A stretch of 64,000 nt of DNA from Oopsacas minuta (GCA_024704765.1 JAKMXF010000309.1:287887-351886); one strand, 5' to 3'. Shown: positions 1,317-56,119, counted from the first letter of the stretch. The notes: generated by a model not told the origin, from the letters alone. Numbers and translations: made by a program.

Positions 1317-2151
1317 TTAATACGAAGGATCTTCATACAAATAATCGTTAGTATCATCCAATGGTATAAGTATAGTGCGTTGTATCTCCGTTGTAGTTAA
1401 AGCAGAATCAGAATTACCATCAACTTCCTTTTTATTGAAATACTGCCATTTCCTATTACAACGACATTCAACACCACATTTACATGAATCACATTTCATG
1501 CATGGGAAATGGCAGCCAGGGCATTCTTGTGACATACAATCGCATAGATCTTGTTTGGAAGCACTTAGTTGTCCTTCATTATTGTACACAGCTAAAATAG
1601 TACATGTATAGATAGAATATGAGATTGTTAATATTACAGTAGACACTGGTGAACCGGAAACAGGACTATACAAAGTGTTAAATTACTCTAGTTAATAGGG
1701 ACAACACCTTTATTCTGCTTAATTGGGTCAAAATGGTACTGGTCACGATGTGACCCTATTAAGCAGAGTCTACTGTATACGCAAAATGTGTGAAAATGAT
1801 AAGTTATATGATAAAATCATATAGATATGTATTTGGAACTATTTTTCTAGCAAAGTTTTGAAATATATGTAAAAGGTGGGAAAATTTGGTTAATCATATG
1901 ATAAATCAAAATTCTATAGAAATCAATATAAACTAACCTAAAAACTGGTCGGTTGGCTGGTCATTGACTGGGACACCAAGGATTTTGCCTCTAGATCTTG
2001 GAGGTATTGTTTGGTAGAAAGCTTGGAAATGAGGACCTGGATTTTGAAACTCTAAACTTTTCAATTCATTTTTCAAAGCAGTCATTTGTCGTGGATTTTG
2101 CTCTTTGTTTTTAGTTTTGCCATCTTTCAGTTTCTTTTTGCCTTTTCCCAT
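1317..2151 (-). CDS. ARL14EP: ARL14 effector protein-like (ARF7EP_C cysteine-rich domain); 2 exons 2151-1938 and 1591-1317, 162 aa
   Basis: Exon 2 has YNNEGQL..DLCDC..ECPGCHFPCMKCDSCKCGVECRCNRKWQY, the ARF7EP_C pattern. Exon 1 has LKSLEFQNPG. GT-AG phase-1 join is in frame. Confidence 0.8.
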
Positions 2152-2218
2152 TTATTAAGAGCTATACTGTCGATACATAGTTAATACAAATTTTGAATAG
2201 GAAGATGTGCTTTAAGGA

Positions 2219-2540
2219 AAATGGTCCCTTCGGTATAGGCTTATTAGATATTTAACCATGGATGGCGGATTTTGTGTATTTGCTTGGATGTTGTTCTAGG
2301 TCAGCGATCACAACCCGTGGTCCACATACGATAGCAGGGGGCCCAAAGGATCTCAAAATTTGTATTGTGGACTATGGGAGGGGTCCACAGAATGTGTTAA
2401 AATTGGTATAAGGGGTCCACACGGGTGAAAAAAGGTTGGAGAATCGGAAACAATATTCTTGATTTGCATAACATCAAATAAATAAAATCCACCATCCATG
2501 GTTAAACATCTGATAATCATATAGAGGGACATTCGCCCCA
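2219..2540. mobile_element. Long-TIR element (aaaatggtccc...tttaaccatggatgg.ggattt) with a nested family B MITE; related copies at ~54276-54533 and ~54948-55115
   Basis: Inverted pair tttaaccatggatggcggattt / aaatccaccatccatggttaaa recurs in two TRAF introns. Ends approximate. Confidence 0.65.
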
Positions 2541-2624
2541 AAAGTATGCAAATATATGTTGTTTCTATATTTGGTATATAAACAATGAAGTAGTATGCAA
2601 AAATGTTTGATCAGTATTTTATCA

Positions 2625-4746
2625 TTACCAGGAGCTGAAATCACCAAATCCAGTTTTAGCCTTTTTCTTCAATTCTTCTCCAGGAATAATTGAATCTCCT
2701 TTCCTTTTAATTTTCATATTATCTGTTATGCAAACTTCATTTTTATGAGTTACATCTAAATACTTTCCTACTTTATTCGTTGATGATTGCGAAATATTAT
2801 CATCTGATTTAGGTGGTAAGAGTCGCTTGTCTATGTAAGGTTTGATTGCTTGCTCCTTCTGTTCTGATAATTTCGCATCCTCAAACGCAATTTTATCATC
2901 AACTTCTTGGAAAGGATCGACAAACACCATCGTTGTGAGTATTTTAACCTCAGAAATGGGGAGATCGTGTTTATCAGTTTTAATTTTCTCGATTTTATCT
3001 AGAATATCAAATCCACCAACTACCTTGCCAAATACTGTATGTTTGTTGTTAAGATGCATGCATAAACGGTATGTAATGAAAAACTGTGATCGATTGGTGT
3101 CTGGTCCCGAATTTGCCATACTCAAAATACCGCGGTCAGAATGAAGCAAATTCGGCTTGAACTCGTCCTTAAAATCTTCCCCCCAGAAAGATTGGCCGCC
3201 AGAACCATCGCCTTTTGGGTCACCCCCTTGTAGAACGAAATTCCGTATTGAGCGATGGAAAATCGTTTCATCATAATAGCCTTTTTTGCAAAGTTTCAAG
3301 AAATTTTCGCAGGTTTTAGACACAAATTCGCAGTGTAATTCGAGGTTAATATTCCCGAAATTTGTGACTAATCTCACATAGCCTTTCTTCTTCACCATAC
3401 TATAGCGGACGAGATCTTTGCCTAGCTTGGCAGGTTTGATATGAGTTTCGCGAGGTGTTGCGGTTGATGTGAATGAAATAGAAGCTTGCCCTGTTGAATA
3501 ATGTGCTGTATTTCGCTCTGTTAATGGTTCTTCTATCACCTTTGAAGTGTCAATTTTCGCGGAATCGATCTTCGATTTCTTTTCTTCCTTATAGAGCTCT
3601 TCTAAAGCCGATTTACACTCAAATGTCAAATGTCTTATATTTCTCATTGGATTCTTATCTTCTTCATTTTTCCATGAAAGATCGTGTTTTATGTAAAAGA
3701 AATTTGTAATATTGAATTTATTTAAATTCTTTGGATCCTGAAGTGTGATTATGTCAGATTTCGCGAATGGTTCGTCTGAGAGTAATTCGCGAAAATTTTT
3801 CGGTTTTATGTTGAGTTCTTGTAAAGCTTCGTTTGAATAGACATTGCCTAAAAATAATAAAATTTCAGAAGTTTCGACATAATTTTCTCTCAATTTGGAT
3901 TATTAAGATGCTAATACAGAAGACCCCGGTTATAAGAACACCCTTGCGAGTAGTTCCATATGTTCTTGTAACCGGTATAAATATACAGGAATATATGAGA
4001 ACTGTTTTTCCAGAGGATGGTGCTTATATCCGGTGTTCTCATAACAGGCATCTGTTGTGTTGTACGAAATAATCTATTTTGACCAAGAAAGTGTATAATT
4101 GTATGTGAATAAATCGTGTTAGAGATTAGAAAGTGTCAAAATCAAATTCTATGTCACCTTTCACCCCTAATTATTCGGTGGAAGGTAATTTCTGGACAAT
4201 TTTGGAAATTGACCAAAAGATGTGAAAATATGATTAATCATGCGATAAGTGTATCTACACTCAATAGTGTCTACTGACCAATACGAATACAGTAACCTCC
4301 ACAATCGGGGCCTGTGGAAACAGGAAACGGATAATTCCTAGTCCAATACAGTGCTAAAATCTAGGAATAATTTTACCTGTGGTTTTGATGAGAATAACAT
4401 GAGAATGTTCCGTAAATTCCTTATACGTCATAGGACAATGTATTTTACTATCAGCGTTTTTATGAAAGTTAACTTTTATCAAAGATTTGGCATTGAGAAG
4501 TTTTCCAGTTATTGGACAGTGTTTGAATTTCTTCAAAAACGGTAGAATTTGTGGTAAATCATATAATATACCATCTTCAGTACAATAAGGATGTTCGGCA
4601 GGTTGTAGTGACAAACCGCAGTAATTATACGGTAGGCGACGGTATTCGGTAGATTCGGTACTTGATGCTTTCTTGCCTCCGTATATAGTACTCCACTCTT
4701 TTGTTGTGAGGTACATCTTGTCCTTTTGATGTTGTTTCTTACCCAT
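2625..4746 (-). CDS. PPIL2: U-box cyclophilin (Cyp60/PPIL2); 2 exons 4746-4377 and 3847-2625, 530 aa
   Basis: N-terminus MGKKQHQKDKMYLT, U-box region (LSLQP..HPYC..G.LYD), cyclophilin domain (FHRSIRNFVLQGGDPKGDGSGG, SMANSGPDTNRSQFFIT), C-terminal FGDFSSW. Phase-1 intron. Confidence 0.95.
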
Positions 4747-4949
4747 AATTGTGCTAGGTTATATATAGTGGGAATTGAAATTTAATGATTCTGCTTAAGA
4801 AAGGTCAGATCGGGACTAGGACATAAAGATTGAAAAAGCACCAAATTTTGAATAACTAATGTCAGTAATCACATCAATAGACTAAATTAAATTACCCAAA
4901 CTAATAACTACGAAAGTTCTCTATCAAATCCATTCTATATTACATCTAA

Positions 4950-5615
4950 CTACATTTCCGGTGCTCCAGGAACAGATGGTGTTTTCCCGCTCTTAGATTC
5001 ATACCATGCCTTTGTAATTGTACGCTTCATGTCTTCATCACCTTCATCGTACATTTTCTGCATCATTTTCATAATGCCAGCACTCGGGTCGTCTGAATCT
5101 TTCTTGGAAATGTCGTCAAGTTTCTCTTTCTCTTTTTTCGCTTCTTTCGTCTTGCGTTCCACCATGGTTACTTCTTCCCAGTTACCAGGTGAGGCTTTTG
5201 GCATGCTGATAATAACTGATCCTCTCTTCAAGATTGCCTTTGCGGAATCTGCCTTGATCTTACCGGATAATTCGCCGATAGAAAAATTGTAATTTCTGTT
5301 ATTCAAATCGTTGACCTTTACATTAACAGAATTTGCAGTGAACTCAGTTACGATTTGACTATCAATAGCACCCTCCAAACCAGGGATATCAGAAACGTAG
5401 ATCTTGACAGTTGAATCGGTTTGGTCCCAACCATATGTTTTGACTTGAATGGTAGGCTTTATTTGTACGGCGGGGGTAGCATGTTGAGGTTTAATTGTCT
5501 TAGAAATCGAGGATTTATTGCGGTTGATAGCATCTTGTAATAGAGAGATAGTCATAGGGTGTTTGGCTTGTGGAATTAGTGATTCCAATTCCTGTACGAA
5601 CGCTTCTATATCCAT
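4950..5615 (-). CDS. CACYBP: Calcyclin-binding protein / Siah-interacting protein, intronless
   Basis: YGWDQTDSTVKIYV (CS domain) and DPSAGIMKMMQKMYDEGDEDMKRTITKAW (SGS domain). True ATG is at 5615; the ORF track starts at a TTG. Confidence 0.9.
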   Translation of the reverse strand: MDIEAFVQELESLIPQAKHPMTISLLQDAINRNKSSISKTIKPQHATPAVQIKPTIQVKTYGWDQTDSTVKIYVSDIPGLEGAIDSQIVTEFTANSVNVKVNDLNNRNYNFSIGELSGKIKADSAKAILKRGSVIISMPKASPGNWEEVTMVERKTKEAKKEKEKLDDISKKDSDDPSAGIMKMMQKMYDEGDEDMKRTITKAWYESKSGKTPSVPGAPEM

Positions 5616-5684
5616 TTCTAATGCTAAGAAATAAGTCAATTTTTCGAAAAATCCACACGAAATTTTCGCCCTCGTATTTATATA

Positions 5685-5913
5685 CAGTCAGCTCCCGTTA
5701 TATCGAAAGTTAAGGAACCGCGATAATTACTTGGATAAAAGCAGAGTTCGATATAACCGGTGAAGTCAATGTTACTTTTACGATTTGGGACCATATTGTA
5801 CAAATTCAGACTGGGCCCCCATATCAATTCAACACATTCTGTGGACCACCTCCCATAGAATGCAATACAAACTTTGGGATCATGTGGACAACCATGGCCT
5901 TGGTTGGAACCGC
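5685..5913. mobile_element. Truncated MITE A joined to a MITE B fragment
   Basis: Left TIR of family A at 5685. Family B internal motifs and right end (ggttggaaccgct) at about 5810-5913. Confidence 0.6.
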
Positions 5914-6371: not shown

Positions 6372-8949
6372 TTACAATTGTGTATCAAATTCTTCGACAT
6401 TTTGGTAGACAGGAATTGTCCCTTGTTGTGGGATTGGGTCAATTTTGAATGGGATTGGCGGTGCTGGACCGTATGTCGGTTCTTCTGACGTCATTGCCTC
6501 AGGTTTAGTCGGGTGTGTACGTTGGTTTATATACTGTTTCACTGCCATATATACAAAACGATATTGTCCCTCGGTTTGCACCATCCCTGAACGCTGAGCA
6601 CGTAGCATTTGTATACTTTTTTGTATATCGATTTCAACATCAAAACCTTGTTTATCAATCAAATGCAATAAAATATCGATTATTATAAAGGTACCTGTAC
6701 GTCCTATACCCGCACTGCAATGGACGACGATTGGACCAGGTGAATTTCCCTCTGACCTGAAATGCTCTTGACGTTTATTAACTTCGCTTAAGAAGCTCAA
6801 AACATTCCCTGCATCATTGGGTATACCATGATCAGGCCAGCTAACGAAATGAAAATAGTAGATGATACGTTCTTCTGGGTCACCCTCTTTGGTCGCACGT
6901 AATTCCCGCACAACGTGAGATATGTATTTCTTCTCGTGTGTACACGTCACCATGATGTTCTTGAATGTTCTTGTCGTATCCTTTTCTGTCCAGTAGCGAG
7001 CGCATTTATTTTTCCCTCTCTCAATTTCGTTACATGTCATTACGATTACACGTGTGTTATCTTGCCAGAGCATACGCCAGAAGTCAATCACTGTGTGTGG
7101 TAGGCAACCTGAATAGATTAAGGTAACATGCTATCCCAATTGAAATTGAATATAGTAGAGAATTTACACCGAAGTTACAAATGTTCAAAAGTTAAGATTT
7201 CTACTACAATAATCTCGAAAATTATATTTTGAAAAGTTACAAACCTTGTGTAGCAATATAAGCCTTCTCACTACCCTCAACTTCTCCACTGATATAATTA
7301 GCGTTTATATAATCACTCTCTCCATCTCCATCTTCATCTGCTAGAATTACACGAGTATGATCGAATGGGAGAATATTCTTATATCTGTATAGGAAATAAA
7401 TATATACTGAGTTAAAAGTGAAATTTTTGAAATTCAATAATATCATATAGGAAATGGAAGAATTGCTCCCTATGGGCTATTTATAGCGGTTCCCAACCTG
7501 TTTTACCCACGGCCTCGCTATACTATCTTTAACACATTATGTGGACCCTCTGCTTTCTCCCGTAGACCACCGACCAAGGAGTACATGAACCTCAGGTTGG
7601 GAAAAGTTGCTCAATTTCGCGATTCAGAGGAAGTACTGAGGGTTAAAAGAGTGAATTTGAGTGAAACTATCAACATTTAAAATGTTTGTAAATACAATAA
7701 AACGTATAATCTCACCTATTCTTAACTCTACAGTCAGGCCTATTACCTTCCTTCCTATTGAATAAATGCTTACATTCCATCTGTTGTAATTGTTCAAATT
7801 CCTCCCAAAATCCTGCTTTACTTCCTCCAATCTCTTTCCCCAATTCTTCTACCCGAGGAGTTATGTCGGTTGGTATTATTCGTGTAGCATTGAATGGTTG
7901 TTTCAAATGAAGTACAGCTCCTAAAGGCAATACTTATGTTACTATGGTAACTATACATGGTTAATGGAATGTCAGAACTATGAATGAAACAATTCTGGAC
8001 GAGGCATATTGTCTAAATCTGTGCCTAAACCTGTCTTATGTACTTATGACATCACTTGGTGTATAATTCAATAAATAGTCACAATACCTGTAATCTCGAC
8101 TAATGGTATCTTCTTATAGTGTTCTATCAACTCATTCAATCCATTAAACTGTTGTCCACCTCCTACGTCACATTTCCCATCCTTACATCTTATCATTACA
8201 TGTGATACTCTATTGTCTATTAGTGCTGATAGCACATAATCACCTGGTTGACTGAGGGAGGCTCTCACAAGGTAACTACCGTTCTGTCCACGGTCTAGAA
8301 GTAGCTTGTCTGCCTCTTTGCCTAGAAAAGCATGTATGCATGTATGTTAGATACAGTGTTCATGCCGAAAGTTGATTCAAAAGTTCAAGAGTTCATACCA
8401 TACGTCAAAAGTTCATGTTATTCCCAATTAATAGTCTGAAATTTCCATTTATGGATATATTTGTCCAAAATCTCGGGATTTATCGGGGCTCTGAATTTAG
8501 GTAACTGAAATTTGTAGGCCCAAAGATTCCCTCAGTTTCAGACTACTAACTTTCTATTGTGACCAAATTTCCGCGATTAGTTTCTTCATATACATACCTG
8601 AAATAGATCCATGAAACCATCTCTCTCTCGTCTCCTCTCTACAACTCAATGGATGTCTCAGTTCAATAATTTCACCATTCTTCTCCCGTAATTGCCCTGT
8701 ATTCTCCATATAATATTGTACTAACTCAGCTAGTGTAGCGAACTTCTCTCCACCAAATAAATCGTAATAATCTCCCTGATTTTGTATACGAATATGTGTA
8801 ACTTCTGAGCCACGCCTGACGGATAAGGTGAAGTCCCCCATTTGGCTTCCACTAGGGCGGGCGATAAAGGAACCATCTCGTCCATGGTCGAGCAATAAAC
8901 TCTCTGCCTCTGGCCCTAGAAGTGTAGGATGAAACCAACGTCTGTTCAT
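6372..8949 (-). CDS. PTPN11: SH2-SH2-PTP tyrosine phosphatase (SHP2/corkscrew); 5 exons 8949-8598, 8321-8088, 7920-7716, 7384-7245, 7108-6372, 555 aa
   Basis: RRWFHP N-SH2, ERWFHG C-SH2, [27 protein letters not shown] and [11 protein letters not shown]. All exon phases are consistent. Confidence 0.95.
7485..7608. mobile_element. MITE family B in a PTPN11 intron
   Basis: gcggttcccaacct ... aggttgggaaaagttg. Confidence 0.7.
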
Positions 8950-9004
8950 GCTAAGTGAAAACAGAATTTGGAATTATTATATTATGCTATCCAGCTACTG
9001 CATA

Positions 9005-11331: not shown

Positions 11332-12188
11332 AGATGCTATATTAGGTTTTACAAAGCAGTTTGAAATACGAAACTGTTTAAAATTAATTTCCCTTGAAAA
11401 TACCAGTGATTTTGTAGTATGTATAGACGCAAAATCGTGTGACACACGACGAGATCGTGAGGTTGAGAGCCCTGATTATGGCGTTTAGACAGGGTACGTG
11501 AAATAAGTATATAAGGACTACACCTGACAGCTGTAACTTTAATAGCTAGCCAACTTTACCGTGACAATTTTTCGATATTTTGTATACAAATAACTTTAGA
11601 ATATTTCATAAATGAACTTTGAAATCAAAGAATCAACATTTTGCATTTTATAGCTTTAGCATATTTCCAACATATCAGGCTATTAGGCGATTCCTAGATC
11701 ACTTCTTCTCGACCTGAAAATATTTTCTAGATGTGGAATGTGTGATTCATCACATATTTATGAAACAAACTTGATGACAATAAAGCTTCAATGAAATTCC
11801 AGAATTGATTGAAACTTGGAGGACCCCCAGGGCTGATTTTTGGCACACAGAGTATTTGGGCCTGCCTCGGACAAGTTCGAGTCTTGGACGAAATTAAGAC
11901 AAAATTGTCGCCTTTTTGGATTTACGAAAAATCACATTATTAGCACCGCTCAGCCAATATACATTATAGAAGTTTGAAATTTTAATCACAGGAATTGGCC
12001 AAATGCAAACTCAAAATGGGATTAATACGTCATCATGACCATTCAAAAAATCCAAATTGTCCAAATTTCGAAAAATTCTAGAATTCTAAACACCATTAAA
12101 AAAGGCATATATTAAACTACACAAATATAAGTTATGAAAAAGTTAGAAATAGTGAATGGAAATAGCCCTGTAGTAAGTAGGTTGGAAT

Positions 12189-12700
12189 CTATACGGGGTT
12201 GTTAGTGGGACTGGTAGTGCCTTGAGTAACGGAATAAGAAGGAGGGCGAGCTTCAGCTGCAGTACCAGCATCATGGTCATCAGGTGGCTTTGCAATGCTA
12301 GATGGCCTAAGAGGGCGGGGTCCTTGTGTTTGCATTGGTTGAGGATATACACAAAGCTGTCGGTATCCAACATAATGTTGAGGAGTTATAGGGATAGTGG
12401 AGGTGGTAGGTCTGTTTGTATTATGTTTAGTGACTGCAACAATTGAAAAACAGATGGCAATACAGGCACCAATTCCAAGGATAATCAAAGGCATGCAGCA
12501 CATTAAACATCCTAGGAAAACCAATGCGTTTATCCATGCTGAATAATTGATATAACCGTTGTAGGAATAATTATTATAGTAATAGCGTATGGTTGTATTC
12601 TAGTATCATCTTCAACAAGGTCATTACCCATGCTTAGAACACATTGTGTAGAGATAAGGATTAGAAGGATGGCGAGTATTGAGGTACGCTTCAGCTCCAT
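12189..12700 (-). pseudogene. Tyr-rich membrane protein, paralog C, frameshifted
   Basis: The ATG at 12700 encodes a signal peptide but stops after 56 aa. The homologous YYYNNY-TM-PPSY part is in another frame (offset 176 nt), and no GT-AG intron can repair it. Confidence 0.65.
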
Positions 12701-12987
12701 GGTAAACTAGATATGGAATTTCAAGGTGTTACAATATTCAAATGTATCTCTTACTCATAAACATATTTTGTTCACAAAGATTGTGGTAATAATAATGTTG
12801 TATTCGAATTCATATACGAGAGATATTATAAAATTTAGTTTGAAATATCGCGAAAATGTTAGTGAAATGTGGTTACAAACATCACATAAACAAACATACA
12901 CTACATCAAAAGAAGTGATAAAATATCAATCAAAGTATTTGGGGACAGTAAAAATAAAGTGAAAATAAGAATAGTTGGGTATAACTC

Positions 12988-13509
12988 TTAAATCTGGAAG
13001 CCAATATGAGGTTTTTGAAGAGGGGGGCCTTGAATCGCAGGAAAAGAATGAGGACCAGCTTGCATATCACCATCATGGTAACCATTTGGCGCCTTAGTAA
13101 TGTTAGGTTGTGGAGGCGGGTTGTTATGGGTTTGAACTGGATGAGGGTTGGCATAAGGTGCATTAGTCATAGGGGCGGCGGCGACAACAGGCATTGGACC
13201 AGTCGTAGATATATGACTTGGTGCATCTAGTGTTCTAGCTGTGCCAATAGCAAAGCATAGAACGACACAGCTTATTATTCCAATTATAATACATAGTATG
13301 GCAGTTACGACCAAACAAAGTATAACAATTACTATAAATATTAATACTGTTCCAGTAGAGCTATAGGTAGAGTTATAGTAATTATAATAGTAGTAAGAGG
13401 ATGTTGTGTTAATTTCTAAATGGGATCGTTCTGGCCGAATTTTAGATTCCTCCGTTGCCATGGTTACGCCATATTGTGTACAGATAATGAATAGAAGAAT
13501 GGCGAGCAT
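12988..13509 (-). CDS. Tyr-rich single-pass membrane protein, paralog D
   Basis: Signal peptide MLAILLFIIC, RPER|S, SSYYYYNYYNS, long Cys-containing TM, Pro-rich tail ending KPHIGFQI. The 5' end aligns with paralog C at nucleotide level. Confidence 0.8.
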   Translation of the reverse strand: MLAILLFIICTQYGVTMATEESKIRPERSHLEINTTSSYYYYNYYNSTYSSTGTVLIFIVIVILCLVVTAILCIIIGIISCVVLCFAIGTARTLDAPSHISTTGPMPVVAAAPMTNAPYANPHPVQTHNNPPPQPNITKAPNGYHDGDMQAGPHSFPAIQGPPLQKPHIGFQI

Positions 13510-14093
13510 TGAGATGCAGTTCTGCCCCACAGATTCCAGTATTGGCTTTTTGTATCTAATAGTAATTTGTATAGGATTTTGGTAGTTAAAATATAAGATA
13601 AGTTCGATAAGAGTACACCAGAAACGCGTTAATATAATACGGTATGAATTTCTAGATAAGACGAACATATATTTACTCAAAATCAGGTTAATAGACAATA
13701 TATATATTCAATACATATTACCCCGATTAATACGAACTCCAAATAAGGCAAACAAATGTCTACCGCCGGTCCGTGTTCGGTCCCTAAACTGGGGTTCATG
13801 AGACTCTTGGTGGTCTAAAGGGTCCACGGGTTAAAAATGTTGAGTAATTTAAGACAACACCATTTAATTCTAAAATAAAACAACTAGAGTACATTTACAA
13901 ACAGAATGATCACAAAATTATTCACATTTTGCTGTCAAAAGACAAACAAATATACACCAAACATAAATAGTATTGGAATATCAGGTAATTATGACAAAAT
14001 ATAATATTATATACAAGCAATGTATGAGATTACATTATCGTTACAGATAGGACAAAATTACAAAACTGGATCTTTTCAAAACTTTAAAATGAG

Positions 14094-20000: not shown

Positions 20001-21648
20001 GAACCTTTCCTACCTTTCAAACCCTGGTCACCACGATTTCCAGCATTCCCGTTTTGACCTGGAGGCCCGTTTGCACCTGCAGGGCCATCACCACCTTGTA
20101 ATCCTTGACCTCCTACTCTACCTGGTAACCCGGCGAATCCCTGATCTCCTTTCTGACCTTGTTGACCAGGATTACCCTAATTAAGCACGAATTAAATAAT
20201 TACAGAATTCAAGCATTTGAAAGAAGTTTCATATTAACAGTGTCCTATTACTTACAATTAATCCTTCTTGTCCAGATTGTCCACCACCTCCAGTAATACC
20301 AGGGGCTCCTGGTGGTCCTCTCGCACCTTTGATTCCAGGCTCACCGGTTGGCCCATTTGGTCCTTGATCAGCATTCAAACCTGGATTGCCAGCTGGTCCA
20401 GGTGGTCCAGGGTCTCCTTGTTCACCATTTTCACCTGGTTGTCCTCCGATACCCTTTTAAGACAAATGTAAATATGAAGTATTGATATCTACTTATAAGG
20501 TAATCTGGTAATGGATGCTTACCGGTGATCCTTGTAATCCATCGTCTCCTTGTTGTCCAAATGCACCTGCTGATCCCTATACAAATTCAATTTCAAATTT
20601 TTCATTCTAGAAATATCTTTACCAAACATTAATACTAGTTCTAGCACTAATAAAGAGTTGTCTACTTACAGGGAATCCATCTATTCCAGCTTCTCCTTTA
20701 GCTCCCTTAGAACCTTGGTCACCATTTGCTCCATCAAAAGCATTTGCACCATCACGACCGTTGTCACCTCTGTCTCCTTTCTGACCAGGCATTCCTACTG
20801 GACCTTCTTCACCTTGACGGCCCTGAAGAAAATGTTATGTAATAAAGGATTTGTTTATTTGTTTGTTTGTTTGTTTGTTGTTTGTCGATTCGTGTAGAAT
20901 TAGTTTGTTTGTGTGCTAGTTGTATATTTGTTTGTTTATCAGATACGTTATAACTCGTGTTACCTGAGATCCAGGAGATCCAGTCCTACCATCTTGACCA
21001 TTATCTCCATAGACTCCCTAAAAAGCCAACAAAACATAAAGTAATGCAAATCACAAAAATATCGTATTTTAACGAAAATACTCACATCTCTTCCTGGATT
21101 TCCTGGTTGTCCGATAGAACCTGTAAATCCTACTACACCCTATATATATATATATGAATAATTAATTACGAAATACAAAGAAATAAATTACGGTAGATTA
21201 TTGAACTTACTTTTCGGCCCTGCAACCCTACTGAACCAACCCGTCCTCTATCACCTTTATCTCCCTAAAGAAATGAAATGGAATTTCAATAAAATGTTAA
21301 TTAAGTTGTTCGGAATTATTCAGAAATTACAAAATATTGTTCTAACAAAAAATTGGATAAAATTTGCACAAATACTTACAGTTGGGCCTGGATCTCCTTG
21401 GGGACCATCTGGACAGTCTGCACAATCACCACCTCCTGATTGCTAAGAAAAATAACAGAATTTTTAGATTATTTTAAAATCAGAGAATAAATTGTTACTT
21501 ACGCCTGAGATTGGTCCTTTCTAGAGAGAATAAAATACGTAAATATTCGTAACATTAGATAAGCAATCTATGAAATGTAACTTACATTATTTTGAGCGAA
21601 AGCCAAGAATAACAATGATGAAAATAATAATATTAATACAAGCTTCAT
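14094..21648 (-). CDS. Fibrillar collagen alpha chain A: ~30 exons, ~335 Gly-X-Y triplets, divergent COLFI-like C-propeptide, ~1250 aa
   Basis: Signal peptide [11 protein letters not shown]; 18-nt micro-exon at 21520-21503. Helical exons of 54/108/162/216/270/306 nt are all phase 0. C-terminal exons contain [39 protein letters not shown] and QLCF. Confidence 0.9.
15130..15405. repeat. Dispersed repeat shared with ~47475-47704 and, inverted and partial, ~33090-33300
   Basis: Collinear blocks attacccctgac, gcaaatctcc.accc, gctag.attcgcac and gg.atctcccta. Confidence 0.65.
15797..15865. mobile_element. MITE family A, short copy in a collagen A intron
   Basis: Both TIRs are present around a 20-nt core. 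Confidence 0.75.
16201..16348. mobile_element. MITE family C (TIR CAGTGTAACCTCCACAAA, TA flanks)
   Basis: TIR pair. Related copies at ~4289, ~19766, ~34424-34560, 37265, ~38703, ~51478 and 56180. Confidence 0.8.
17141..17206. repeat. 33-bp exact tandem duplication in a collagen A intron
   Basis: gaaatttcgcaatttataaatacaataaacact x2. Confidence 0.9.
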
Positions 21649-22435
21649 GTTGCTAGAAAATAATAAAATAACAAATAAATATAATTCTCAAAACGACGAT
21701 TTCAATTTCTCCTTTTACGGTGGACACGAATATTATAATCTCGAGAAAATAGTGTTTCGAAAATATGAGGAAAAATACGAATTTCACTGCAGCTTTTCAT
21801 ATGACAAACTATTAGCGAAATAAACATGTGAATAATATCATAAAGAAACTCACCTTGTGTATTTGTTTAAGTGAAAATACTATCTATATTTTTCTAATAC
21901 CGAAGGTCGGTTCTCATAATATAGACCAGAAAACCGAAAATCGAAGTGTTGATCTTGATAACACTCCAATGCAAAAGAATTGACAAATTTGTATTTACGA
22001 AGGACAACGAATACTCTCCCAAGAACAGAAATGAAGTTGGCTGTAGTACTTCTTCACAATGCAAATGATTTCGCCAGACAACTGGTATTAGCTATATACT
22101 TGAATTGAATTGCCATAGACAGTGCATGCTCTATAACAGTAAAATACCATTATACACTACAATGCTAATATTAACTAACTCAAACTGAGTCTAATATTGT
22201 ATTTAGAATAAAGCTTGTATTACTTTCAATGTGTAATACATAGTAGTAGCGGACAATTGGTATGCATAGAGATTGTATTATAATGTTGTAGTATTTGGAA
22301 ATTTGAGCATATTGAGTTGACTGTTTAGTTTATTCTATAAGGATTAGTATATCGAATCTATGAACATAGTTTGGAGACGATAAATGAATAGAAATTACGT
22401 TAAATAAGGAAATGATCACACAATAAATCGTGATA

Positions 22436-23865: not shown

Positions 23866-23959
23866 TATATATCGCTTTATATATTCTGTGGATTAGAAAA
23901 TGTCAAGATTTTAAAGATTCGACAGCATAGCGGGCCTTTGAGCTGTGATATAACTGAAT

Positions 23960-24228
23960 CATATCCAGTTATATCGAAGCTCAAAGGAGCGTGATAATTA
24001 CTTTGATATAAGAGGAGTTCTATATAACCCCGATTAAATATATGTCACTTTGACAAATTGTGACCATATTTGTACAATTTTACAACTCAATATAAGCGAG
24101 TATTTTGATATACAGTGAAACTTCGTTAATACGAACACCAACGGACGGGCAAAAATTGTTCGCTTTATCCAGAGTTCGTATTAAGAAGGTTCCACTGTAA
24201 TGGCGTTCGATATGACTGGAGTTTACTG
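23960..24228. mobile_element. MITE family A interrupted by a nested MITE at 24113-24197
   Basis: The inner element TA|cagtgaaacttcgttaatacgaac...gttcgtattaagaaggttccactg|TA splits the outer copy. Confidence 0.75.
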
Positions 24229-30463: not shown

Positions 30464-31575
30464 TCTATATAGAGATAAAGGTAATTTTAAAATTACTATT
30501 CGTAGCAAGAAAATGTTGTTTCGTCTCGAATTGTATTTTAAAACTCACGTAAAAAGGGTGAAATTTTCCCTATAATCTTTCTCGTATCTTTACTGCCCCA
30601 ATAACATCTATTGGGAAATAAGTTGTTGAATCCTGAAATCAGTTTCTTGTCGTATTAAAACTGATCTCAACTTGTAGCAGATTTGGATAGAAAAAGTGAA
30701 GTAGAATGCAACTGTACAGTGCAAGATAATAATATATAGAAAGCTATACTAGCATAGTATCTTTCAACAATGCATTGCTCTAAAATATTAACTCGTCTAA
30801 AGTTATTGTATAGTAGAAATATGATATTATAAGATTCTATGTGTAGCGTACTAAGCCTGATATTGAATAGGTAGTAATTGCATTGTTGAAGTACATAGTC
30901 TATTATTACTAGAGAATTGTTGTAACGGCCGAATTTGTATGTCGATTGTGTTTGACTCAACCATAGGAATTGTATTGGTGACTTGATGCAGTTTAGTTTC
31001 CCGTTTTTGAAGTTTAATTTCGGGCAGAGATTGTGTTTGTTATTTTTTAGATAATATTTATACAATAAAATTGGTTGAAATACATTTGACTATTATCGTG
31101 AATTGTCGTATGAAGAGATAACCCCCCCCTCTCCATATATTCGCATTAGAATCAAATAAATCAGATAATCTGGAGTTATAATGCAAGTGTAAACTGGGAA
31201 TTATAGCGTCACAAAAATACAAAAAACTCCACTAAAAAATGACAAGGAAATTGCTAGAATATTTGCCGCGATATACTATTTTTAAGTTAGATAGAAGATT
31301 CGATCGTAAATGTTTATGTAAAAATGATTCGAACATACATACCTTCATTAGAAGTACAACTTCATACATCTTGTATATCAGCATCATATCTATAGTATAC
31401 AATAAAATTAATGTTATTAAGATAGTCTACGTGCTCTTCTAATTAAAACACTGACAATAATATTTCTAATACAACAACCTACTTGAACGACGAGTCAGTG
31501 GCGGATCCAGGATTTCAAGGGGTGTGAATTTTCGCGTTGCGAGCACTTTAAGGGTGTATGGGTATTTGCCAGATA

Positions 31576-32791: not shown

Positions 32792-33128
32792 TCTATCTAG
32801 CTTTTAATTAAATTTTGGGTAAAAACTGATTCATTTATACATATTTTTTTGTGCTATATACGTGAAGTGACCATTTTTGGGCACAAATTTGTAAGTTTGC
32901 AATTGGCTAAATTACTTCAAAATGACAATATTGCAAATTATATATACTTTGCAAAAATTATATTTAAGTATCCACAATTCAAGGAAATTATATCACTTCT
33001 AATTATAATTATTGCATGATTACCAATTTGATAGAGTAATCAGATATCATTTATTAGAGAAAAGAATTAATTAGGTATTTGAAACGTAGTTATTTTTAGT
33101 ACAGAACCTATAGGGAGATGCCCTAATG

Positions 33129-34230: not shown

Positions 34231-34684
34231 GAATAATTCTGTAAAATTGGATTAAATGATTGAGTTTTGCTTAAAAATTCTGATAAAAAAACCTATTAAA
34301 GATTCACCTGTGGCCACATTATGAATAAAATGTTCATAGATTTTGTTGTTGGCATGAAAATTTACAAATTTGACTAGCAAAACTAGCATTTTAAGGCTAG
34401 AAATACTCCAGATGATCGCCATGCTGTGTAACCCCACAAACGGGGTGTCAGGGACGCCGACAAATTCTTCCACATTTGTGGAGGTTCATTTATATGTAAT
34501 TAAGAATTTGTTTCTCTTTGGTTTTCACTATTTCCAAAGACCCATTTGTGGAGGCCTCACATATAAATTTACACAAATAATTTTCAATTATTTTACACCA
34601 CATAAGTATAGAATAAGCTTTATATAACATAGTTTGCGAAAATATAAAATAACCATCAGTTTGTATGAAGGAGCAGAGGGAGTG

Positions 34685-36211
34685 CTAATCTCTACCTAAA
34701 GTTATGTAACCAGGTTTCGGAGATTGCAAATGGGATCGCCATTTCATGCAGAGGCAAAATATGCCAGTCAGGCCAGCGACAAAAAGAGCAAAACCAGAAA
34801 TCATCCCTGCCCATGAGATAGATTTCGCAGTGTCGACTAAATCGAGTTTTCTGCGAAAATCGGTCGCCATTGCATCAGAAACTTCTCCAGTAACATCGAT
34901 ATAGAAAAGTGGGAAATATGTTATATCAGGAATGCGTCGAAAATACGTCACACTATTTTGTTTGAGCAGATAGTTGACTTGCAGACGACTGTGTGTAGCG
35001 AGCGTAGCTCCCGTAATAGGCTCGATATCCCCGTAGCTCATATGCAGATCCTCTTGGGGGTTCAGACCGGATACATTGGTGATGAGACAGTGGTCACCGT
35101 ATAGGAAATGTGGGAGGCTAGCGTATATGCCTAGACCCTTTGGGTCCGTACTGTTTCCAAGGAAAAATAGGCCACTTGGGCCGTTTTGGTAAAAACGAGC
35201 ATTTTCAGGATTCATAGTTGAGTTTTCTAATTCAGATGCTGGTATCGCGAATCTGTACGTTTTTATGCCTTTATGCGAGGGCTTGTCACCGCGAAATTTG
35301 ATAGATAACGGGCGAATCATTTCGTCAACGAAGATCTGTAAAATATCCTTCTCCTCGACTAACGGTTGGAAGACTAACCCTTCCGTACCGTTTATCATAT
35401 TCGCATAGTCATCTCTCCAAATTGTCAAACTTGAATTTCCCTCCCACACTTGATATTGCCCAATTTTTGATGGAATACACACACCAGTATGAACTGTAGA
35501 TAATTTCATAGAAGAATTACTCGTACTATGAATACTAAAGCTGCTGGCTGAATAGAAACCTAAATTCTGGAGACGACGAATAAAACTATCCGAATAGCCC
35601 CAAATTAGTTCTTTAACTTTTAACTTTTTGTATAACTTCGAGCCAGTGAGGTATATTAACCCGTCTAGGACAGATTCACCGAAAAATGAGCTCGTCTTTT
35701 CGGCTGCAGCGACTAGCGGAAGATTTAAGCTAACAATGACGTCATTTTCGCTGAGTTTACTTCCTGTAGCTTCTTGGTCAAATGTATAATATTTCCGTTG
35801 CCTATACGTAACTAGGCATTCATCTTCGGAATGTGTGATATCTTCCTTGACTCTAACCTCTCGAAATTTATATGGACCGACCGCGACGAAAGACGGTTTT
35901 TGACCGTAAATAAATTCACCAGGATTCGTCCAGTTGAAGAAGTAATAGTCATGGTATAAATCTATTTCTGGTGCACTCCATTGGTTAAAAAGCAGTGATC
36001 CGTTTTTCAATTTCATTTGACTGGCCACTGATTGAGCTATCGCTTTATCAACGTAACCCATTGAGATGCCAGCGAGGGAAATTGTTGATAAACCCGCAGC
36101 GATCATTAAGAATGATAGAGCCGATAGACAGACTAATAATTTTCTCTGTCGCATAAGTGCGATTTCCGCGATAGCATAACGCTTTTGGTGATCTTGAAAA
36201 CTCAACTGCAT
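34685..36211 (-). CDS. CD36 family class B scavenger receptor (SCARB/LIMP-2-like), intronless
   Basis: Two terminal TMs, YYFFNWTNP, GPYKFRE, INGTEG, SLPHFLYGD and IEPITG. The start may be Met20. Confidence 0.92.
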   Translation of the reverse strand: MQLSFQDHQKRYAIAEIALMRQRKLLVCLSALSFLMIAAGLSTISLAGISMGYVDKAIAQSVASQMKLKNGSLLFNQWSAPEIDLYHDYYFFNWTNPGEFIYGQKPSFVAVGPYKFREVRVKEDITHSEDECLVTYRQRKYYTFDQEATGSKLSENDVIVSLNLPLVAAAEKTSSFFGESVLDGLIYLTGSKLYKKLKVKELIWGYSDSFIRRLQNLGFYSASSFSIHSTSNSSMKLSTVHTGVCIPSKIGQYQVWEGNSSLTIWRDDYANMINGTEGLVFQPLVEEKDILQIFVDEMIRPLSIKFRGDKPSHKGIKTYRFAIPASELENSTMNPENARFYQNGPSGLFFLGNSTDPKGLGIYASLPHFLYGDHCLITNVSGLNPQEDLHMSYGDIEPITGATLATHSRLQVNYLLKQNSVTYFRRIPDITYFPLFYIDVTGEVSDAMATDFRRKLDLVDTAKSISWAGMISGFALFVAGLTGIFCLCMKWRSHLQSPKPGYITLGRD

Positions 36212-37264
36212 TTCTCAGAAAATTGATAATAAACACGAGATTTCACATATAGAAATGCCCAAGAGAATATTTCCATCGTATTTATGTGATAGCAAATAGG
36301 AAACCTTTCCCAATGCATTTTGACGTGTTCAGTCAAAGGGCAGCCATTCATTAGCTATCAGCTTTTGGTGGCTCAATATACCAACCATAAATGCGGTTTT
36401 TAATGATTCAGTCTTTGAAATTTTCGCGTTGGGGTACACATATTAAAGTGTATTTGTTTGGGGGAGATTGATATGAAATAAATCGCGCTTTTTCACGATG
36501 ATTCAATACAGCGATTTTCTAATAACAATATATTGTTGGTTATGCAAATAAGAGTAGGAAAATAGTGGAATATGTAGAAACCAGAAGTAGAAATTACATA
36601 TATGTAATCTCGAACATGTGTTGGCTGTCAGTGAGATACAGTAGAACCTCATAAATGCGAATTTGCGGATAATACGAACAAATACTCACACAAAATCAGG
36701 TCTTTACAATGGTTACCCAATTGATTGCATCGAAGTAATTATCACAGTGCCTTGAGCTTCGATAAAGCGGTAATTGACTGTATTATTGTAGTATAAGCAA
36801 GAATATACGTATTTAATATATTACATGTTTGTTATCGATAATGTTAGCATAGATAGAACAGATTGAAGAATAATGAAGCAATAACGAGGCGGCTTACTTG
36901 TTAGGAAATCCTAAATGCGATATGAAATGTTTTGTGAAATATATAGGAAAGCCGTTTAACCTAATTAAACCTTATATACACAGCATGGCACACAAACAAA
37001 CAAAGAAACATTATGTTTGTTGGGGGTTTCATTGTATTAATGTTATTTATTAAGATGAGCTTTGAACTAATAGAAATATATTCAGTTAGAATTAAGTAAA
37101 TTTGCATTAAGGCTGTGTGGAGAAAGCGAGGTGGTAATTGAATTGAAATTGGTGGTTATATTTTGCAAGAATTAAATAGCAAATAGTCCAATATTATAGG
37201 CAATTTTTCCAGTTTTCTTGACCCAAAGTTTCGATGTTCTAATGTATTTTATCCTGGAAATTTT

Positions 37265-41630: not shown

Positions 41631-41670
41631 AGCTAGTATGTATTCTTTGAAATAATACAAAGTTAATGTG

Positions 41671-41868
41671 AATTCCTTAATGGTCACCATGGAAACATAA
41701 GATCGTTTATTAGAAAGTATTCTTTCACAGGGAATTAAATGCTAAAGTAAATTCCTTAATGGTAACCATGGAAACATAAGATCGTTTATTAGAAAGTATT
41801 CTTTCACAGGGAATTAAATGCTAAAGTAAATTCTTTGAATGGTAACCATGGAAACATAAGATCGTTTT
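41671..41868. repeat. 79-bp tandem repeat (~2.5 copies), each unit carrying an RFX X-box-like motif
   Basis: Units start at 41671, 41750 and 41829. GT(C/A)ACCATGGAAAC occurs at 41683, 41762 and 41842. Confidence 0.9.
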
Positions 41869-42996: not shown

Positions 42997-43142
42997 AGAA
43001 GTGAGAGATTTCGCGATGTAAAAGTGTGATAGGCTAACGAGTAAGGGAATTGTAATTTCCACGTATTAACCGAATTTGTATCAACTAAATCTACTGAACT
43101 AATTTTTAAACCAATCTCAAAATTCGTAAATTTAAATCGTAT

Positions 43143-44622: not shown

Positions 44623-44894
44623 CAAATTAAGATGAAATCACTCAATTACGTCACCAAATCATTAAGTGTATGGCTAAGAAATAAAAGAATTCATAAGGTA
44701 GCTTAGCAACGATTTGGTTGATTGGAATGCATTCTTTTACACCCTCATAATAAATTCAAAACACAATATACTATTGTAATTTATTGAAAACTGATCTAAC
44801 GTATTTGTGAATGGGGTATACTTGTACATATAATAAACTCTCATTTACATTCCAAAACCCTATATTGTAACTAAGCAGTTCGGAGTGATTATAA

Positions 44895-46673: not shown

Positions 46674-46918
46674 TGCTAGTGTAAAAGTTTAAAGAGATAG
46701 TTAGGACACCATGGATTTAGGGAATTTCATAACATATACACAAAAAAATTCGAAAAAACACAGAAAATAAGCCAATATAAGTATTTGAAAAATACACTCA
46801 AGAAATGTATACAAAAATAATGCAAAAATAAATCAACGCAATTATACAAATATGAGCCAAATTTAAAATATAAATTAATGAAATAATCTTATCTACAAAA
46901 ACTACACTAATTCTCTCT

Positions 46919-48500: not shown

Positions 48501-48623
48501 TATACAATGTTACTGCTAATCGCGAAATTTGACAAATCGTGAGGTTAGATTGACAAATAAAGTGTTTAGACATCCATGGTACAGTAATATTAAATGCAAG
48601 ACTATGGACGAAATACTGCATTT

Positions 48624-48741
48624 CACCGGTTCCCAACCTCTCCTCCGTAGACTCCTTAATACAAATTTGGAGATCTTATAGATTCCATTCTCTTGTCCGT
48701 GGACCACCAAGGGGGGAATGGACCCAGGTTGGGAACAGCTG
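48624..48741. mobile_element. MITE family B
   Basis: caccggttcccaacct ... aggttgggaacagctg. Confidence 0.8.
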
Positions 48742-48882
48742 TTATATTTCTGCAATGAAATATGCAACAATTGAATAAATTCTTTCTGTGAACCATGGAT
48801 AATAACAACCACAAATGCCATAACATATTATAATACAAATAAATAAACACCAATATAGAAAATAAAATTTTCTAACACATAT

Positions 48883-50757: not shown

Positions 50758-52470
<1,713 letters not shown>

Positions 52471-52787
52471 AAATATCTAAAACTTTGACTAGTAGGTATT
52501 AGAATAAACACTACATACATATGTATGTATTTGTGTATATATAGTGAGACAGTTGAATCACACTGATTATTTTGATGATGTCATTTGTTATATAAGCATG
52601 TTATTATCGTTGTTGAATTGTTTAGGGAGACATTATACATATTTATTATTATAGATTAGGATAGAACCATTCGAATGGAAATTTCCAATATAATTGTGGT
52701 CTAAGTTTGATGAATCGAAATTCCCCCAATTACGCCCAGAAATCGCGAAATATACATATACCCTGGGTTTCACATATTTTCCAAGGT

Positions 52788-52866
52788 CAGCGGTTCTCTC
52801 ATGGATCCTTTTGTGGTCCAAGGAAGATAGCAGGGGGCTACGGGTGAAAAGGTTGGGAACCCTTGT
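52788..52866. mobile_element. MITE family B
   Basis: cagcggttctc ... ggttgggaacccttg, with shared gtggtcca core. Confidence 0.7.
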
Positions 52867-53194
52867 CCTAGGCCATGTTCCCTATGACAAAGGAACACGA
52901 ATTTCGCAGCTAATATGACCAAATATTCGCGTAATATTTCGCAATTTCGAACCCTTAGTATGAATCAAAGCTGTATATTATTTGTTTACTAAATACCTTA
53001 TAAGGTTTGTTTGCATTTTTCGAGTTTATAAATAGTTTTCGCGGCTTTTCATTCTTGATAAAATCATGTTTGATTCACTGTTTTTTACACAATATATTAT
53101 TTTATCATATTGAAAGTATTCACAGAAAGTTTATGTATGTAACACATTTTGATATATAATATTGCGAGAATTTTCTACTCTAATAGTTGGATTT

Positions 53195-56119
53195 ATGGAA
53201 GTATACACTCCCACAGAATCTGTTGAAATATGCGATTCTTCACACTTACAGATGTTGACACCAGATGACCACCAGGGGCTACTATACGTTAGAGTTGGTA
53301 CGATATACGGTGGGTATGACCCGGATTTTTTCATGGAGCCTATGGAAGATCATTTTGTATGTCCTATTTGTAAGGGCATATTGTCGTGTCCTACTCTTAT
53401 TGTAGAGTGTGGTCATGTGTTTTGTGAGAAATGTATTCAAGAAAGTAATAGGTAAGGACATGTTTCTCATCCATTGTTTTCCAGGAAACTGGGGTGTTTA
53501 ATATATACAGTGGATACTGGTTATAAAAACACCCTTGGGTTAGCAACCCTTGTTCTTGTAACCGGTAAAATATACAGGAATATATGAGAACCGTTTTCCA
53601 GAGGATGGTGCTTATATCCGGCATGTTCTTATAACCGGCATTTACTGTGGGATATTTTCGTTTTTACATCTCTGCAATTTAGACATTTCCGCGGGGATAC
53701 ACGTACACCAAAATGCCCAATGGACAATATAGCCTTACAAACAGATCTTATACAAGAAAGATTCCTGAGACGGTATCTGTTACAGAAATATGTATTTTGT
53801 CCTTTGAAAAAGAGAGGGTGCATATGGGAGGGAGATCTGAGTGAGATTGGTGGTCATCTGGATAACTGTTTATTTTTTAGGTAAATTATTATATTCTAAC
53901 AACTTATTCTGGTTTTAATTCGGTTTTAATTCTTATCCATTGTTTCATTTCACATAATAAGCAATTATTCTCTCTACTTTTTTAGAGAAATCTGTAAAGC
54001 TGGGTGTGGAAGTGTTATATATCGTAAAGATATGCAGCCTCACATCAAAGAATTATGTCCAAACAGGAAATTAAAATGTAGATACTGTAAGGATGAATTA
54101 TTATTTCGCGAGGTAGAACAGCATAATAAAGAATGCTATTACTTTCCAGTACACTGTATTAATCAGTGTGGTACATATCTAGAGCGTAAGAACCTTCATT
54201 ATCATTTGGAGACGGATTGTCCTGAGACGAGTATTGAGTGTATTTATTCAAAGTTAGTTATATTAATATGTTATGCGAAAATGGTCCCCTTATATGCTTA
54301 TTTAACCCTGGATGGTGAATTTAGTTTATCTACTTGGTTGTTCTAGGCTATTTTGAGGCACTCCTTGCATTGTTGAAGTGGATATTTACCATGAATTGTG
54401 GATATTCATGCTTGGATGTTGTTTTAGTATATTTTGAGTACCCTGATCTTGATTCGAAGGAGAAATTGTGTAAGAAACATAAAATATACTAAATCCACCT
54501 TCCATAGTCACAAGCATATCGAGAACCATTTTTGATGTCAAAAAATTATAGCACTCTAAAATCCATGGTTCGCTTATCTAATACCTAAGAATCTACACAA
54601 CTAATGAATTTAACTAAATTCCTTATGGAAGATTCAATTCGCTGCAATACAAGTATTCTTTATATACTATAAGTTCACACATAACAACAGTATATGGTAA
54701 TAGGAATTATTTATAGATATGGCTGTGATTTCCGCTCACCACGTAAAGCAATGACAGAGCACATGAAACAGAGGATAGAGCACCATCTCAATTGTATTTT
54801 GACTTATACGAGTAATCTTGAAAAGATGTGTATTAATCTACATTCCAAATACTCACAGTTGGAGAATAGAATGGAGACAGTGTGTAAATTGAATTCTGTA
54901 TCTTCTGAAGGTAGGATATGGGATTTTTACCTTGTTATGAGAAATATTTAACCATGGCTGGTGGATTTAGTTTTTCTGCTTGGATGTTGTTTTAGGTGAT
55001 TTTAGGCATTTCTCGCTTGGCTGGAGGGAGGATTCTATATATTGAACATAAATACACGAAATCTACCATCCATGGTTAAATATCTAATTAGCACCTAGTA
55101 GGGACCATTTTTGTCAAAACGTGATGCCATTTTACTGTAAATTATTAATAATAGATTCTTCCTATTCATCAGTCTCACATCGAGTTAAGCATTCTACTTG
55201 CAATGAATTTACTTCAATGGATGACGTCATTGACACGGGATCATCTAGTTACCCTATGGTATCTGGGCTGCATACGCCCTCGTGTCAAGCTAATAACAAT
55301 GAAGTGTTCTCTTGCAGGAGAATGTCTGACATCATGATAAATAATTCTTCTAATTATCACGTGGGTACCACGGATGCAGCTGTAAGCTTTACATGGCATA
55401 TTTATGACGTAAGTATTTAGCAGTTAGTGTTGCCATATAATGAAAAAGTTCATAGAATTCGGCTTTGGCATGAATTTTGTGGTCACATCATCTGGTAACA
55501 CTGATATCCAAGGTTTCACTGTAGCATTTTACATTATTATCCATGGCTCAATGATCGTATTGTAGGTTGAAGAGAAAATGCAGAATGAAGAGGAGGTATT
55601 TTCTGATGCTTTCTTTTCAGGGCCAGAAGGATACAAGTTCTGTCTGAGTGCAGATATGAATGGCTATGAATCAGGAGAGGGAACTCATTTGTCTGTGTTT
55701 ATTCATATGATGAAGGGAGCTAATGATCATAATATATCATGGCCCTTTAAAGGAAAATTCATTGTTACACTTTTGAATCAGATTGAAAATGATAGACATC
55801 ATTCTATAGGTTAGAATTTTAATTCTGAGAATTTCATAGTATAAAGTTATAAATAGACAGGTTTATCATATGATTAATCATTCGAGATTTTGTTTCAACG
55901 GCTATTCACTTTTTAGAAATTCAAGCTGGAGAAGCAAATATCAATGCTTTTCGTTGTCCAGAGCAAAGTCGAGGTACTCATGGCTGGGGGTCTCACGAGT
56001 TTATTTCTCACGAAGAGTTGAAAGCCATATCGCTATCTTGTCAATATTTGAAAAGTGATTCAATACATATTAGAGTTACAGCTGATTCAGAGGTCAAGCT
56101 ACCTATATGGCTATGGTGA
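53195..56119 (+). CDS. TNF receptor-associated factor (RING - TRAF zinc fingers - coiled coil - MATH); 7 exons, 538 aa
   Basis: Exons 53195-53451, 53683-53880, 53986-54252, 54717-54910, 55155-55408, 55566-55809, 55917-56119 sum to 1617 nt in frame. RING CPICKGIL...CGHVFC; MATH GYKFCL...GTHLSVF..MKG..D...WPF. Confidence 0.9.
53508..53647. mobile_element. MITE with TIR CAGT.GAT.CCGGTTATAAGAACA; related copies at 3917-4057 and ~47396-47460
   Basis: The internal segment (aatatacaggaatatatgagaac...ccagaggatggtgcttatatccgg) is nearly identical between the PPIL2 and TRAF introns. Confidence 0.8.

Follow-up and report, generated by a model that had tools for sequence, protein, structure and literature searches.

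Putative 3' splice sites beside start codons in the glass sponge Oopsacas minuta suggest three kinds of mRNA 5' end, including spliced-leader trans-splicing

Gene content and start codons of the window

The window analysed here is a stretch of 64,000 nucleotides (nt) from the glass sponge Oopsacas minuta (GCA_024704765.1, JAKMXF010000309.1:287887-351886), in which most start codons are closely preceded by TAG or CAG (YAG), the trinucleotides that typically end 3' splice sites. An initial annotation had proposed that these YAGs are acceptors at which most mRNAs receive a common leader by spliced-leader (SL) trans-splicing. The predicted proteins of the window, among them CACYBP, PITP and USP10, match assembly GCA_024704765.1, contig JAKMXF010000309.1, residue for residue, and JAKMXF000000000 is given as the O. 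minuta whole-genome project in the O. minuta genome paper. Pfam matches identify PPIL2, CACYBP, an SH2 tyrosine phosphatase (PTP, PTPN11-like), CDC123, PITP, CD36, a GRAM-CCCH-UFD1 protein (GRAM-UFD1), PIH1D, RMI1, USP10, MVB12, UVRAG/VPS38, RAB1 and a RING-TRAF protein (TRAF), in agreement with the names first assigned; the other genes are an ARL14EP-like gene, two fibrillar collagen genes (collagen A and collagen B), a coiled-coil gene, four genes designated TM-A to TM-D, and a bZIP gene. Between positions 1317 and 50757, 20 consecutive genes are all transcribed from the minus strand, with stop-to-next-ATG distances of 146-1527 nt (median 473 nt). Positions below refer to the minus strand unless the plus strand is indicated.

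Start codons were set independently of the YAGs, from NCBI gene models and then from N-terminal alignment with orthologues in five related sponge genomes. These relatives (R1, contigs L005/L006; R2, L010/L016; R3, L011; R4, L012; R5, L014/L015) are represented by long contigs in ENA and Logan metagenome assemblies that were found through the CD36 cluster and a search with PITP; their coding DNA is approximately 75-81% identical to the window. The N-terminal peptides of the orthologues align from residue 1 almost throughout, which confirms most of the starts, and the start of PPIL2 agrees with the NCBI model. The start of PIH1D was corrected to 42996 from the annotated 42975, the model beginning seven codons late; that of collagen A to the signal-peptide ATG at 21648 (annotated 22150); and that of collagen B to 30463, at a conserved signal peptide (annotated 31387). 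In the NCBI models, both collagen coding sequences begin too far upstream, by 500-900 nt relative to the conserved ATGs of the signal peptides. TM-D is not annotated and was assigned a start at 13509 (region 12988-13509), and TM-C is annotated merely as a 101-residue open reading frame (ORF) at its 3' end (12494), with a frame break after the start at 12700. On the plus strand, one NCBI model (51725-56119) fuses RAB1 with the RING-TRAF-MATH gene into a single product of 741 residues; the C-terminal CC motif of RAB1 is followed by a stop codon at 52468-52470, and a separate ATG at 53195 opens the TRAF gene. The protein clusters of CACYBP, PITP, USP10 and others contained the NCBI protein alone and no O. 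minuta transcript contigs, and the PITP search found genomic contigs of the relatives and no glass-sponge transcripts.

Distances between YAG and start codon

The gap between YAG and start codon was counted from the G of the nearest TAG or CAG to the A of the ATG. It is a single nucleotide in PTP (TAG at 8951-8953, ATG at 8949), where the site follows a pyrimidine tract and scores in the 94th percentile of AGs, in collagen B (30465-30467, ATG 30463), in PITP (32793-32795, ATG 32791), which has another TAG 5 nt further upstream, and in UVRAG (50759-50761, ATG 50757). The gap is 2 nt in GRAM-UFD1 (41633-41635, ATG 41630), USP10 (46676-46678, ATG 46673), RAB1 (51720-51722, ATG 51725, plus strand) and CACYBP (5618-5626, ATG 5615), the last having tandem TAGs with gaps of 2 and 8 nt. 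TAG also precedes the ATG of collagen A by 4 nt (21653-21655, ATG 21648), TM-B by 5 nt (11337-11339, ATG 11331), TM-C by 6 nt (12707-12709, ATG 12700), PPIL2 by 7 nt (4754-4756, ATG 4746), TRAF by 8 nt (53184-53186, ATG 53195, plus strand) and ARL14EP by 10 nt (2162-2164, ATG 2151). CAG is found 8 nt before the ATG of the coiled-coil gene (34239-34241, ATG 34230), 12 nt before that of TM-D (13522-13524, ATG 13509; a weak acceptor context in the 10th percentile) and, in a tandem TAG-CAG with gaps of 15 and 12 nt, before that of MVB12 (48513-48518, ATG 48500). Larger gaps separate the ATG of CDC123 from a CAG (20 nt; 23886-23888, ATG 23865), which follows a pyrimidine tract and has the top acceptor score inside 150 nt (97th percentile), and the ATGs of PIH1D (37 nt; 43034-43036, ATG 42996) and RMI1 (51 nt; 44674-44676, ATG 44622) from TAGs, the latter after a T-rich tract and in the 98th percentile. 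The gaps of TM-A, bZIP and CD36 are 21, 128 and 143 nt, respectively.

All 16 gaps listed in the initial annotation were reproduced exactly on the independently fixed starts, as were the acceptors 20-51 nt upstream of CDC123, PIH1D and RMI1 and the lack of the signal at bZIP, which has no YAG inside 128 nt. Its tally of 16 genes out of 22 becomes 17 out of 22 with a gap of at most 12 nt, TM-D being the seventeenth site; the gene list also differs, with CD36 and TM-D counted and bZIP placed twenty-third.

A gap of at most 12 nt is found at a fraction of 0.296 of all positions and 0.299 of the 2204 other ATGs in the window, for which 17 out of 22 has a binomial p of 5e-6. TAG tops the enrichment among the 64 trinucleotides of the 12-nt zone (14 observed versus 3.6 expected, p = 8e-7). 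It is in frame with the start codon in TM-C alone, and stop-codon ascertainment, the definition of ORFs by stops, is therefore not the cause. Very little credence can be given to chance, base composition, such ascertainment or a Kozak-type context, any of which would account for the YAGs with no RNA processing: YAG is common in AT-rich DNA, with 30% of positions having one within 12 nt, and at gaps of 1-2 nt the AG would provide a purine at -3 or -4, but besides the comparison with other ATGs and the single in-frame TAG, the gaps range over 1-12 nt with no fixed position, proximity is conserved in five other genomes, and the flanks resemble those of acceptors.

Conservation in five related genomes

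The relatives preserve the order and orientation of the genes from RAB1, on the opposite strand, through UVRAG, MVB12, USP10, RMI1, PIH1D, GRAM-UFD1, CD36, the coiled-coil gene and PITP to collagen B. A YAG lies within 12 nt of the ATG at 26 of the 37 orthologous starts in the five relatives, versus a background of 32%. The coiled-coil gene has gaps of 8, 11, 6, 6 and 7 nt in the relatives, so that all six species have a YAG at 6-11 nt, and GRAM-UFD1, with 2 nt in O. minuta, has gaps of 2, 6, 2 and 2 nt. Gaps in the relatives are 1 and 5 nt for UVRAG, 6 and 4 nt for MVB12, 7 and 1 nt for RAB1, 9, 1, 13 and 17 nt for PIH1D, and 22 and 3 nt for RMI1. For USP10, one relative has a YAG at 2 nt and another an AAG at 2 nt, and the seven bases AGCAATG, ending in the start codon, are common to three species. 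The AG of PITP is at an identical offset in four of six species. MVB12 has a tandem duplicate in R5 (L015, 4156 and 6029), with ctag 6 nt before the ATG in both copies.

The intergenic DNA upstream of the coiled-coil, GRAM-UFD1 and PITP genes does not align across the 5-6 species compared, and it contains no conserved donor or exon block, unlike that of collagen B (below). At these three genes it is the predicted acceptor beside the ATG that is preserved, and not a promoter or first exon.

Resemblance of the YAGs to internal splice acceptors

For reference, 37 acceptors and 37 donors of cis-spliced introns were collected at the Gly-X-Y exons of collagen A and collagen B. The acceptors are rich in T, with TAG at the end in 29, CAG in 7 and AAG in 1. 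Pyrimidine content in the 20 nt upstream is 0.60 for pre-ATG YAGs, 0.64 for cis acceptors and 0.50 for all YAGs of the window (p = 8e-4 for pre-ATG versus all YAGs); the median AG-free zone is 29, 40 and 12 nt, respectively (p = 0.08); and TAG makes up 82% of YAGs before ATGs, 81% in cis acceptors and 53% in the whole window. The likeness to internal acceptors claimed in the initial annotation is thus recovered in all three measures. Scoring by position-weight matrix is weak when used alone, the pre-ATG site having the best score within 150 nt in only 10 of the 22 genes, and a search for branch-point motifs returned AT-rich words alone, with no discrimination. From these properties and from their conservation, the YAGs just before start codons are probably genuine 3' splice sites at which splicing takes place.

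At 10 of the 17 sites, the pre-ATG AG is followed by C. Within 20 nt upstream of the 22 starts, TAGC occurs 10 times versus 0.9 expected (11-fold) and TAGCA 8 times versus 0.39 (20-fold), far beyond the enrichment of YAG in general. CA is the core of animal initiators, and the pyrimidine-rich flank on the upstream side is compatible with an initiator as well, so that the YAG, often as TAGCA, could be read as an initiator-type transcription start motif that yields very short leaders and involves no splicing. This explanation is quite improbable: eight genes would be given leaders of 0-2 nt, which are incompatible with cap-dependent scanning in animals; the relatives keep the YAG and not TAGC, which stands at just 4 of the 37 orthologous starts and is thereby ruled out, with TAGCA, as a conserved requirement; the TAG-to-CAG ratio and T-rich flank are those of the cis acceptors; and at collagen B a conserved donor accompanies this type of site.

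Cis 5'UTR introns of the collagen genes and the CD36 promoter

In an alignment of five species (A1), both a GTGAGT donor and a TATAG acceptor upstream of collagen B are invariant; the spacer between them is not conserved and measures approximately 60-340 nt. In O. minuta the donor stands 85 nt before the ATG, and the predicted cis intron in the 5' untranslated region (5'UTR) extends from the first G of the donor at 30548 to the acceptor, ending 1 nt before the start codon (30465-30548). Further upstream, a block of approximately 160 nt (30690-30850) with a TATA-like run at 30726-30738 is nearly invariant in the five species and is more conserved than the coding sequence. This block has neither covariation nor Sm-like conservation after the donor and was therefore rejected as a structured RNA or SL RNA gene; it may be the promoter plus first exon, and is probably a collagen promoter module.

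Collagen A has a predicted 5'UTR intron of the same kind at 21653-21853, from the donor aag|GTGAGT (first G at 21853, 205 nt before the ATG) to the TAG at a gap of 4 nt. The evidence comes from within the O. minuta genome: the donor scores 11.1 versus a cis median of 9.1, the acceptor is in the 99th percentile, and the region upstream (22119-22235) has some motifs in common with the collagen B block. Because of these upstream GTGAGT donors, invariant in the case of collagen B, the acceptors of both genes probably belong to cis 5'UTR introns. The common leader proposed for the two collagen sites is accordingly not borne out; splicing in cis to a non-coding exon upstream is the alternative that the initial annotation had itself set against its proposal.

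CD36 has no YAG within 143 nt of its ATG at 36211, with only a GAG at a gap of 2 nt. At 36278-36286, 67-75 nt before the ATG, there is a TATA box, CATAAATAC, that is invariant in six species (alignment A5), and judging from this conservation the predicted 5' end of CD36 is a classical TATA promoter with a short unspliced leader. A conserved non-coding block at 36846-37007, approximately 640-800 nt upstream of the ATG and common to R1 and R5, contains a conserved GTAA donor-like site.

Upstream donors and upstream ATGs

If the remaining acceptors belonged to ordinary cis 5'UTR introns, with a separate promoter and a short non-coding first exon for each gene and no added leader, donors would be required upstream; the comparative data reveal this arrangement for collagen B and hint at it for collagen A. 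Moderate donor-like scores are found before PTP (8.5), UVRAG (8.3), CACYBP (7.3) and PITP (7.2) and speak for such introns. However, the density of donor-like sites in upstream intergenic DNA is that of the background, with no enrichment (3.7 per kb versus 4.2 in the whole window), and even a lenient threshold picks up none in seven intergenic regions, those of ARL14EP (473 nt), GRAM-UFD1 (406 nt), USP10 (245 nt), MVB12 (382 nt), TM-A, PIH1D and RMI1. Of the 15 genes other than the collagens that have a nearby YAG, 4 reach a donor score of at least 7, whereas approximately 10 would be expected with cis donors of the usual strength (p = 1e-3). A cis intron would also leave unexplained the lack of any conserved donor or exon block before the coiled-coil, GRAM-UFD1 and PITP genes, and intergenic regions of 146-270 nt, the size class of that upstream of PPIL2 (203 nt), would need room for a 3'UTR together with a promoter, exon and intron. 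Ordinary cis introns at all or most of the pre-ATG acceptors are on these grounds rather unlikely. At the sequence level, an acceptor without a paired donor (outron), as expected of SL trans-splicing, is present in approximately 15 genes, among them ARL14EP and PPIL2 as candidate trans-splice acceptors, and absent from collagen A and collagen B.

In the 100 nt on the far side of the acceptor, ATGs show no depletion relative to shuffled sequences (31 versus 37 +/- 6), which also speaks for splicing at these sites. In GRAM-UFD1, splicing at the TAG would cut off an in-frame upstream ATG at 41690, 60 nt upstream of the start, that is found in no orthologue. Directly upstream of the same start, a 79-nt tandem repeat (41664-41867) comprises 2.6 copies with 96% matches, each unit of which contains the acceptor-like sequence tttag|ca; the in-frame ATG at 41690 is in the last copy.

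Three kinds of 5' end

The reading that we consider probable is that the pre-ATG YAGs are 3' splice sites and that the genes of the window have three kinds of 5' end. The first kind would comprise approximately 15 mostly housekeeping genes (ARL14EP, PPIL2, CACYBP, PTP, TM-B, TM-C, TM-D, PITP, the coiled-coil gene, GRAM-UFD1, USP10, MVB12, UVRAG, RAB1 and TRAF) in which an acceptor with no partner donor lies 1-12 nt upstream of the ATG; in CDC123, PIH1D, RMI1 and TM-A the acceptor would be further off, at 20-51 nt. At such sites the spliceosome would attach a capped spliced leader to the pre-mRNA and everything upstream would be discarded; the leader would originate from an SL RNA gene at another genomic locus. 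The leader would supply the 5'UTR, and for this reason an acceptor could be as close as 1-2 nt to the ATG. The second kind, that of the two fibrillar collagen genes, would have a conserved promoter of its own, a non-coding first exon ending at GTGAGT, and a short cis intron with an acceptor that abuts the ATG; the third, that of CD36, would have a conserved TATA box and a short unspliced leader. Since the window appears to hold three kinds, the signal described in the initial annotation lumps two of them together: a common leader remains the expectation for approximately 15 genes with unpaired acceptors and is contradicted by the cis donors of collagen A and collagen B.

For the approximately 15 genes, SL trans-splicing is the best explanation because gaps of 1-2 nt, as in eight genes, need a 5'UTR provided in trans, because the DNA upstream offers no matching donors and nothing else that is conserved, and because the mechanism is documented in glass sponges. 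The partner of these acceptors is most likely a shared leader, and its gene most likely lies outside the window.

Several observations weigh against this interpretation. An Rfam scan of the window gave no match, and neither a leader sequence nor an SL RNA gene was identified in it. Of the 17 sites, two are probably spliced in cis, and the same could apply to further sites that have a weak donor or one on the far side of the adjacent gene; the donor model was built from the collagen introns alone. The acceptor profile is little informative in so AT-rich a genome, the pre-ATG sites falling at approximately the 80-99th percentile, below the cis acceptors, and the difference in AG-free zone is merely a trend. 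The relatives that yield the count of 26 out of 37 starts are not phylogenetically independent. Finally, 4% of the long reads of another hexactinellid, Aphrocallistes vastus, carry a leader (PMC10282587), a proportion that fits poorly with trans-splicing of most genes and favours cis introns instead.

Comparison with known systems and the question of operons

SL trans-splicing is known in hexactinellid sponges, as stated in PMC7986045 (citing Douris, Telford and Averof 2010), and in A. vastus a leader of approximately 37 bp is found on long cDNA reads (PMC10282587); what the initial annotation said of these sponges is matched by the literature. The proposed mechanism is of a known kind, in a species where it has so far not been described. 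Neither 'splic' nor 'operon' occurs in the O. minuta genome paper. The resemblance to the other hexactinellids consists of unpaired acceptors near the ATG in a member of the same animal class. The reports for those sponges rest on expressed sequence tags or long cDNA reads, whereas O. minuta is represented here by a genomic footprint, which extends to approximately 15-19 of the 23 genes, far above the 4% of leader-bearing reads in A. vastus. Introns in the 5'UTR that abut the ATG occur in animals, plants and fungi, and collagen A and collagen B would be alike in this respect; for the other approximately 15 genes neither a donor nor a conserved first exon was found.

The run of genes on the minus strand consists of co-oriented neighbours with short spacers, an arrangement kept in the relatives. 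As in the SL1/SL2 operons of Caenorhabditis elegans and in those of Ciona and Oikopleura, acceptors lie beside the ATG, co-oriented genes are a few hundred bases apart, and there is no recognisable conservation of promoters between genes. Intergenic distances in C. elegans operons are typically approximately 100 nt, and the median spacer of 473 nt in O. minuta is longer. The polyadenylation signals AATAAA and ATTAAA are missing from many spacers, and their spacing is uninformative. A further difference from nematode and tunicate operons is that genes with a predicted TATA promoter of their own (CD36 and the collagens) lie inside the run. Given the CD36 TATA box and the putative promoter block upstream of collagen B, at least some genes in the run would be transcribed on their own, and because of these autonomous promoters the operon reading cannot cover every gene. 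For hexactinellids, no operons are reported (PMC7986045).

On the far side of the TRAF gene, positions 56100-62200 are gene-poor, with 32-33% G+C and no noteworthy ORFs, and adjoin the bZIP gene, which has its ATG at 62255 and a basic-zipper exon near 63700-64000. Dispersed repeats that resemble miniature inverted-repeat transposable elements (for example at 1714-1778 and 24108-24184) have non-syntenic copies in the related genomes.

Implications

It is possible, though doubtful on present evidence, that much of the O. minuta genome is organized as co-oriented polycistronic gene trains resolved by SL trans-splicing, inside which tissue-specific genes such as those for the collagens and CD36 keep TATA promoters of their own and 5' ends of the conventional type. 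If so, the gene trains would be the first operons in a sponge, and a single strand would combine two modes of expression in alternation, an arrangement shared by glass sponges. Should trans-splicing apply to most mRNAs of O. minuta, the published gene models would need revision, as in the start codons of PIH1D and both collagens and the merger of RAB1 with its neighbour; the 5' ends of genes in this genome could not be read as promoters; and glass sponges would offer a non-bilaterian case in which the addition of leaders may be set against an operon-like packing of genes. The division between housekeeping genes, collagens and CD36 is a concrete prediction for existing RNA data (PRJNA761294).

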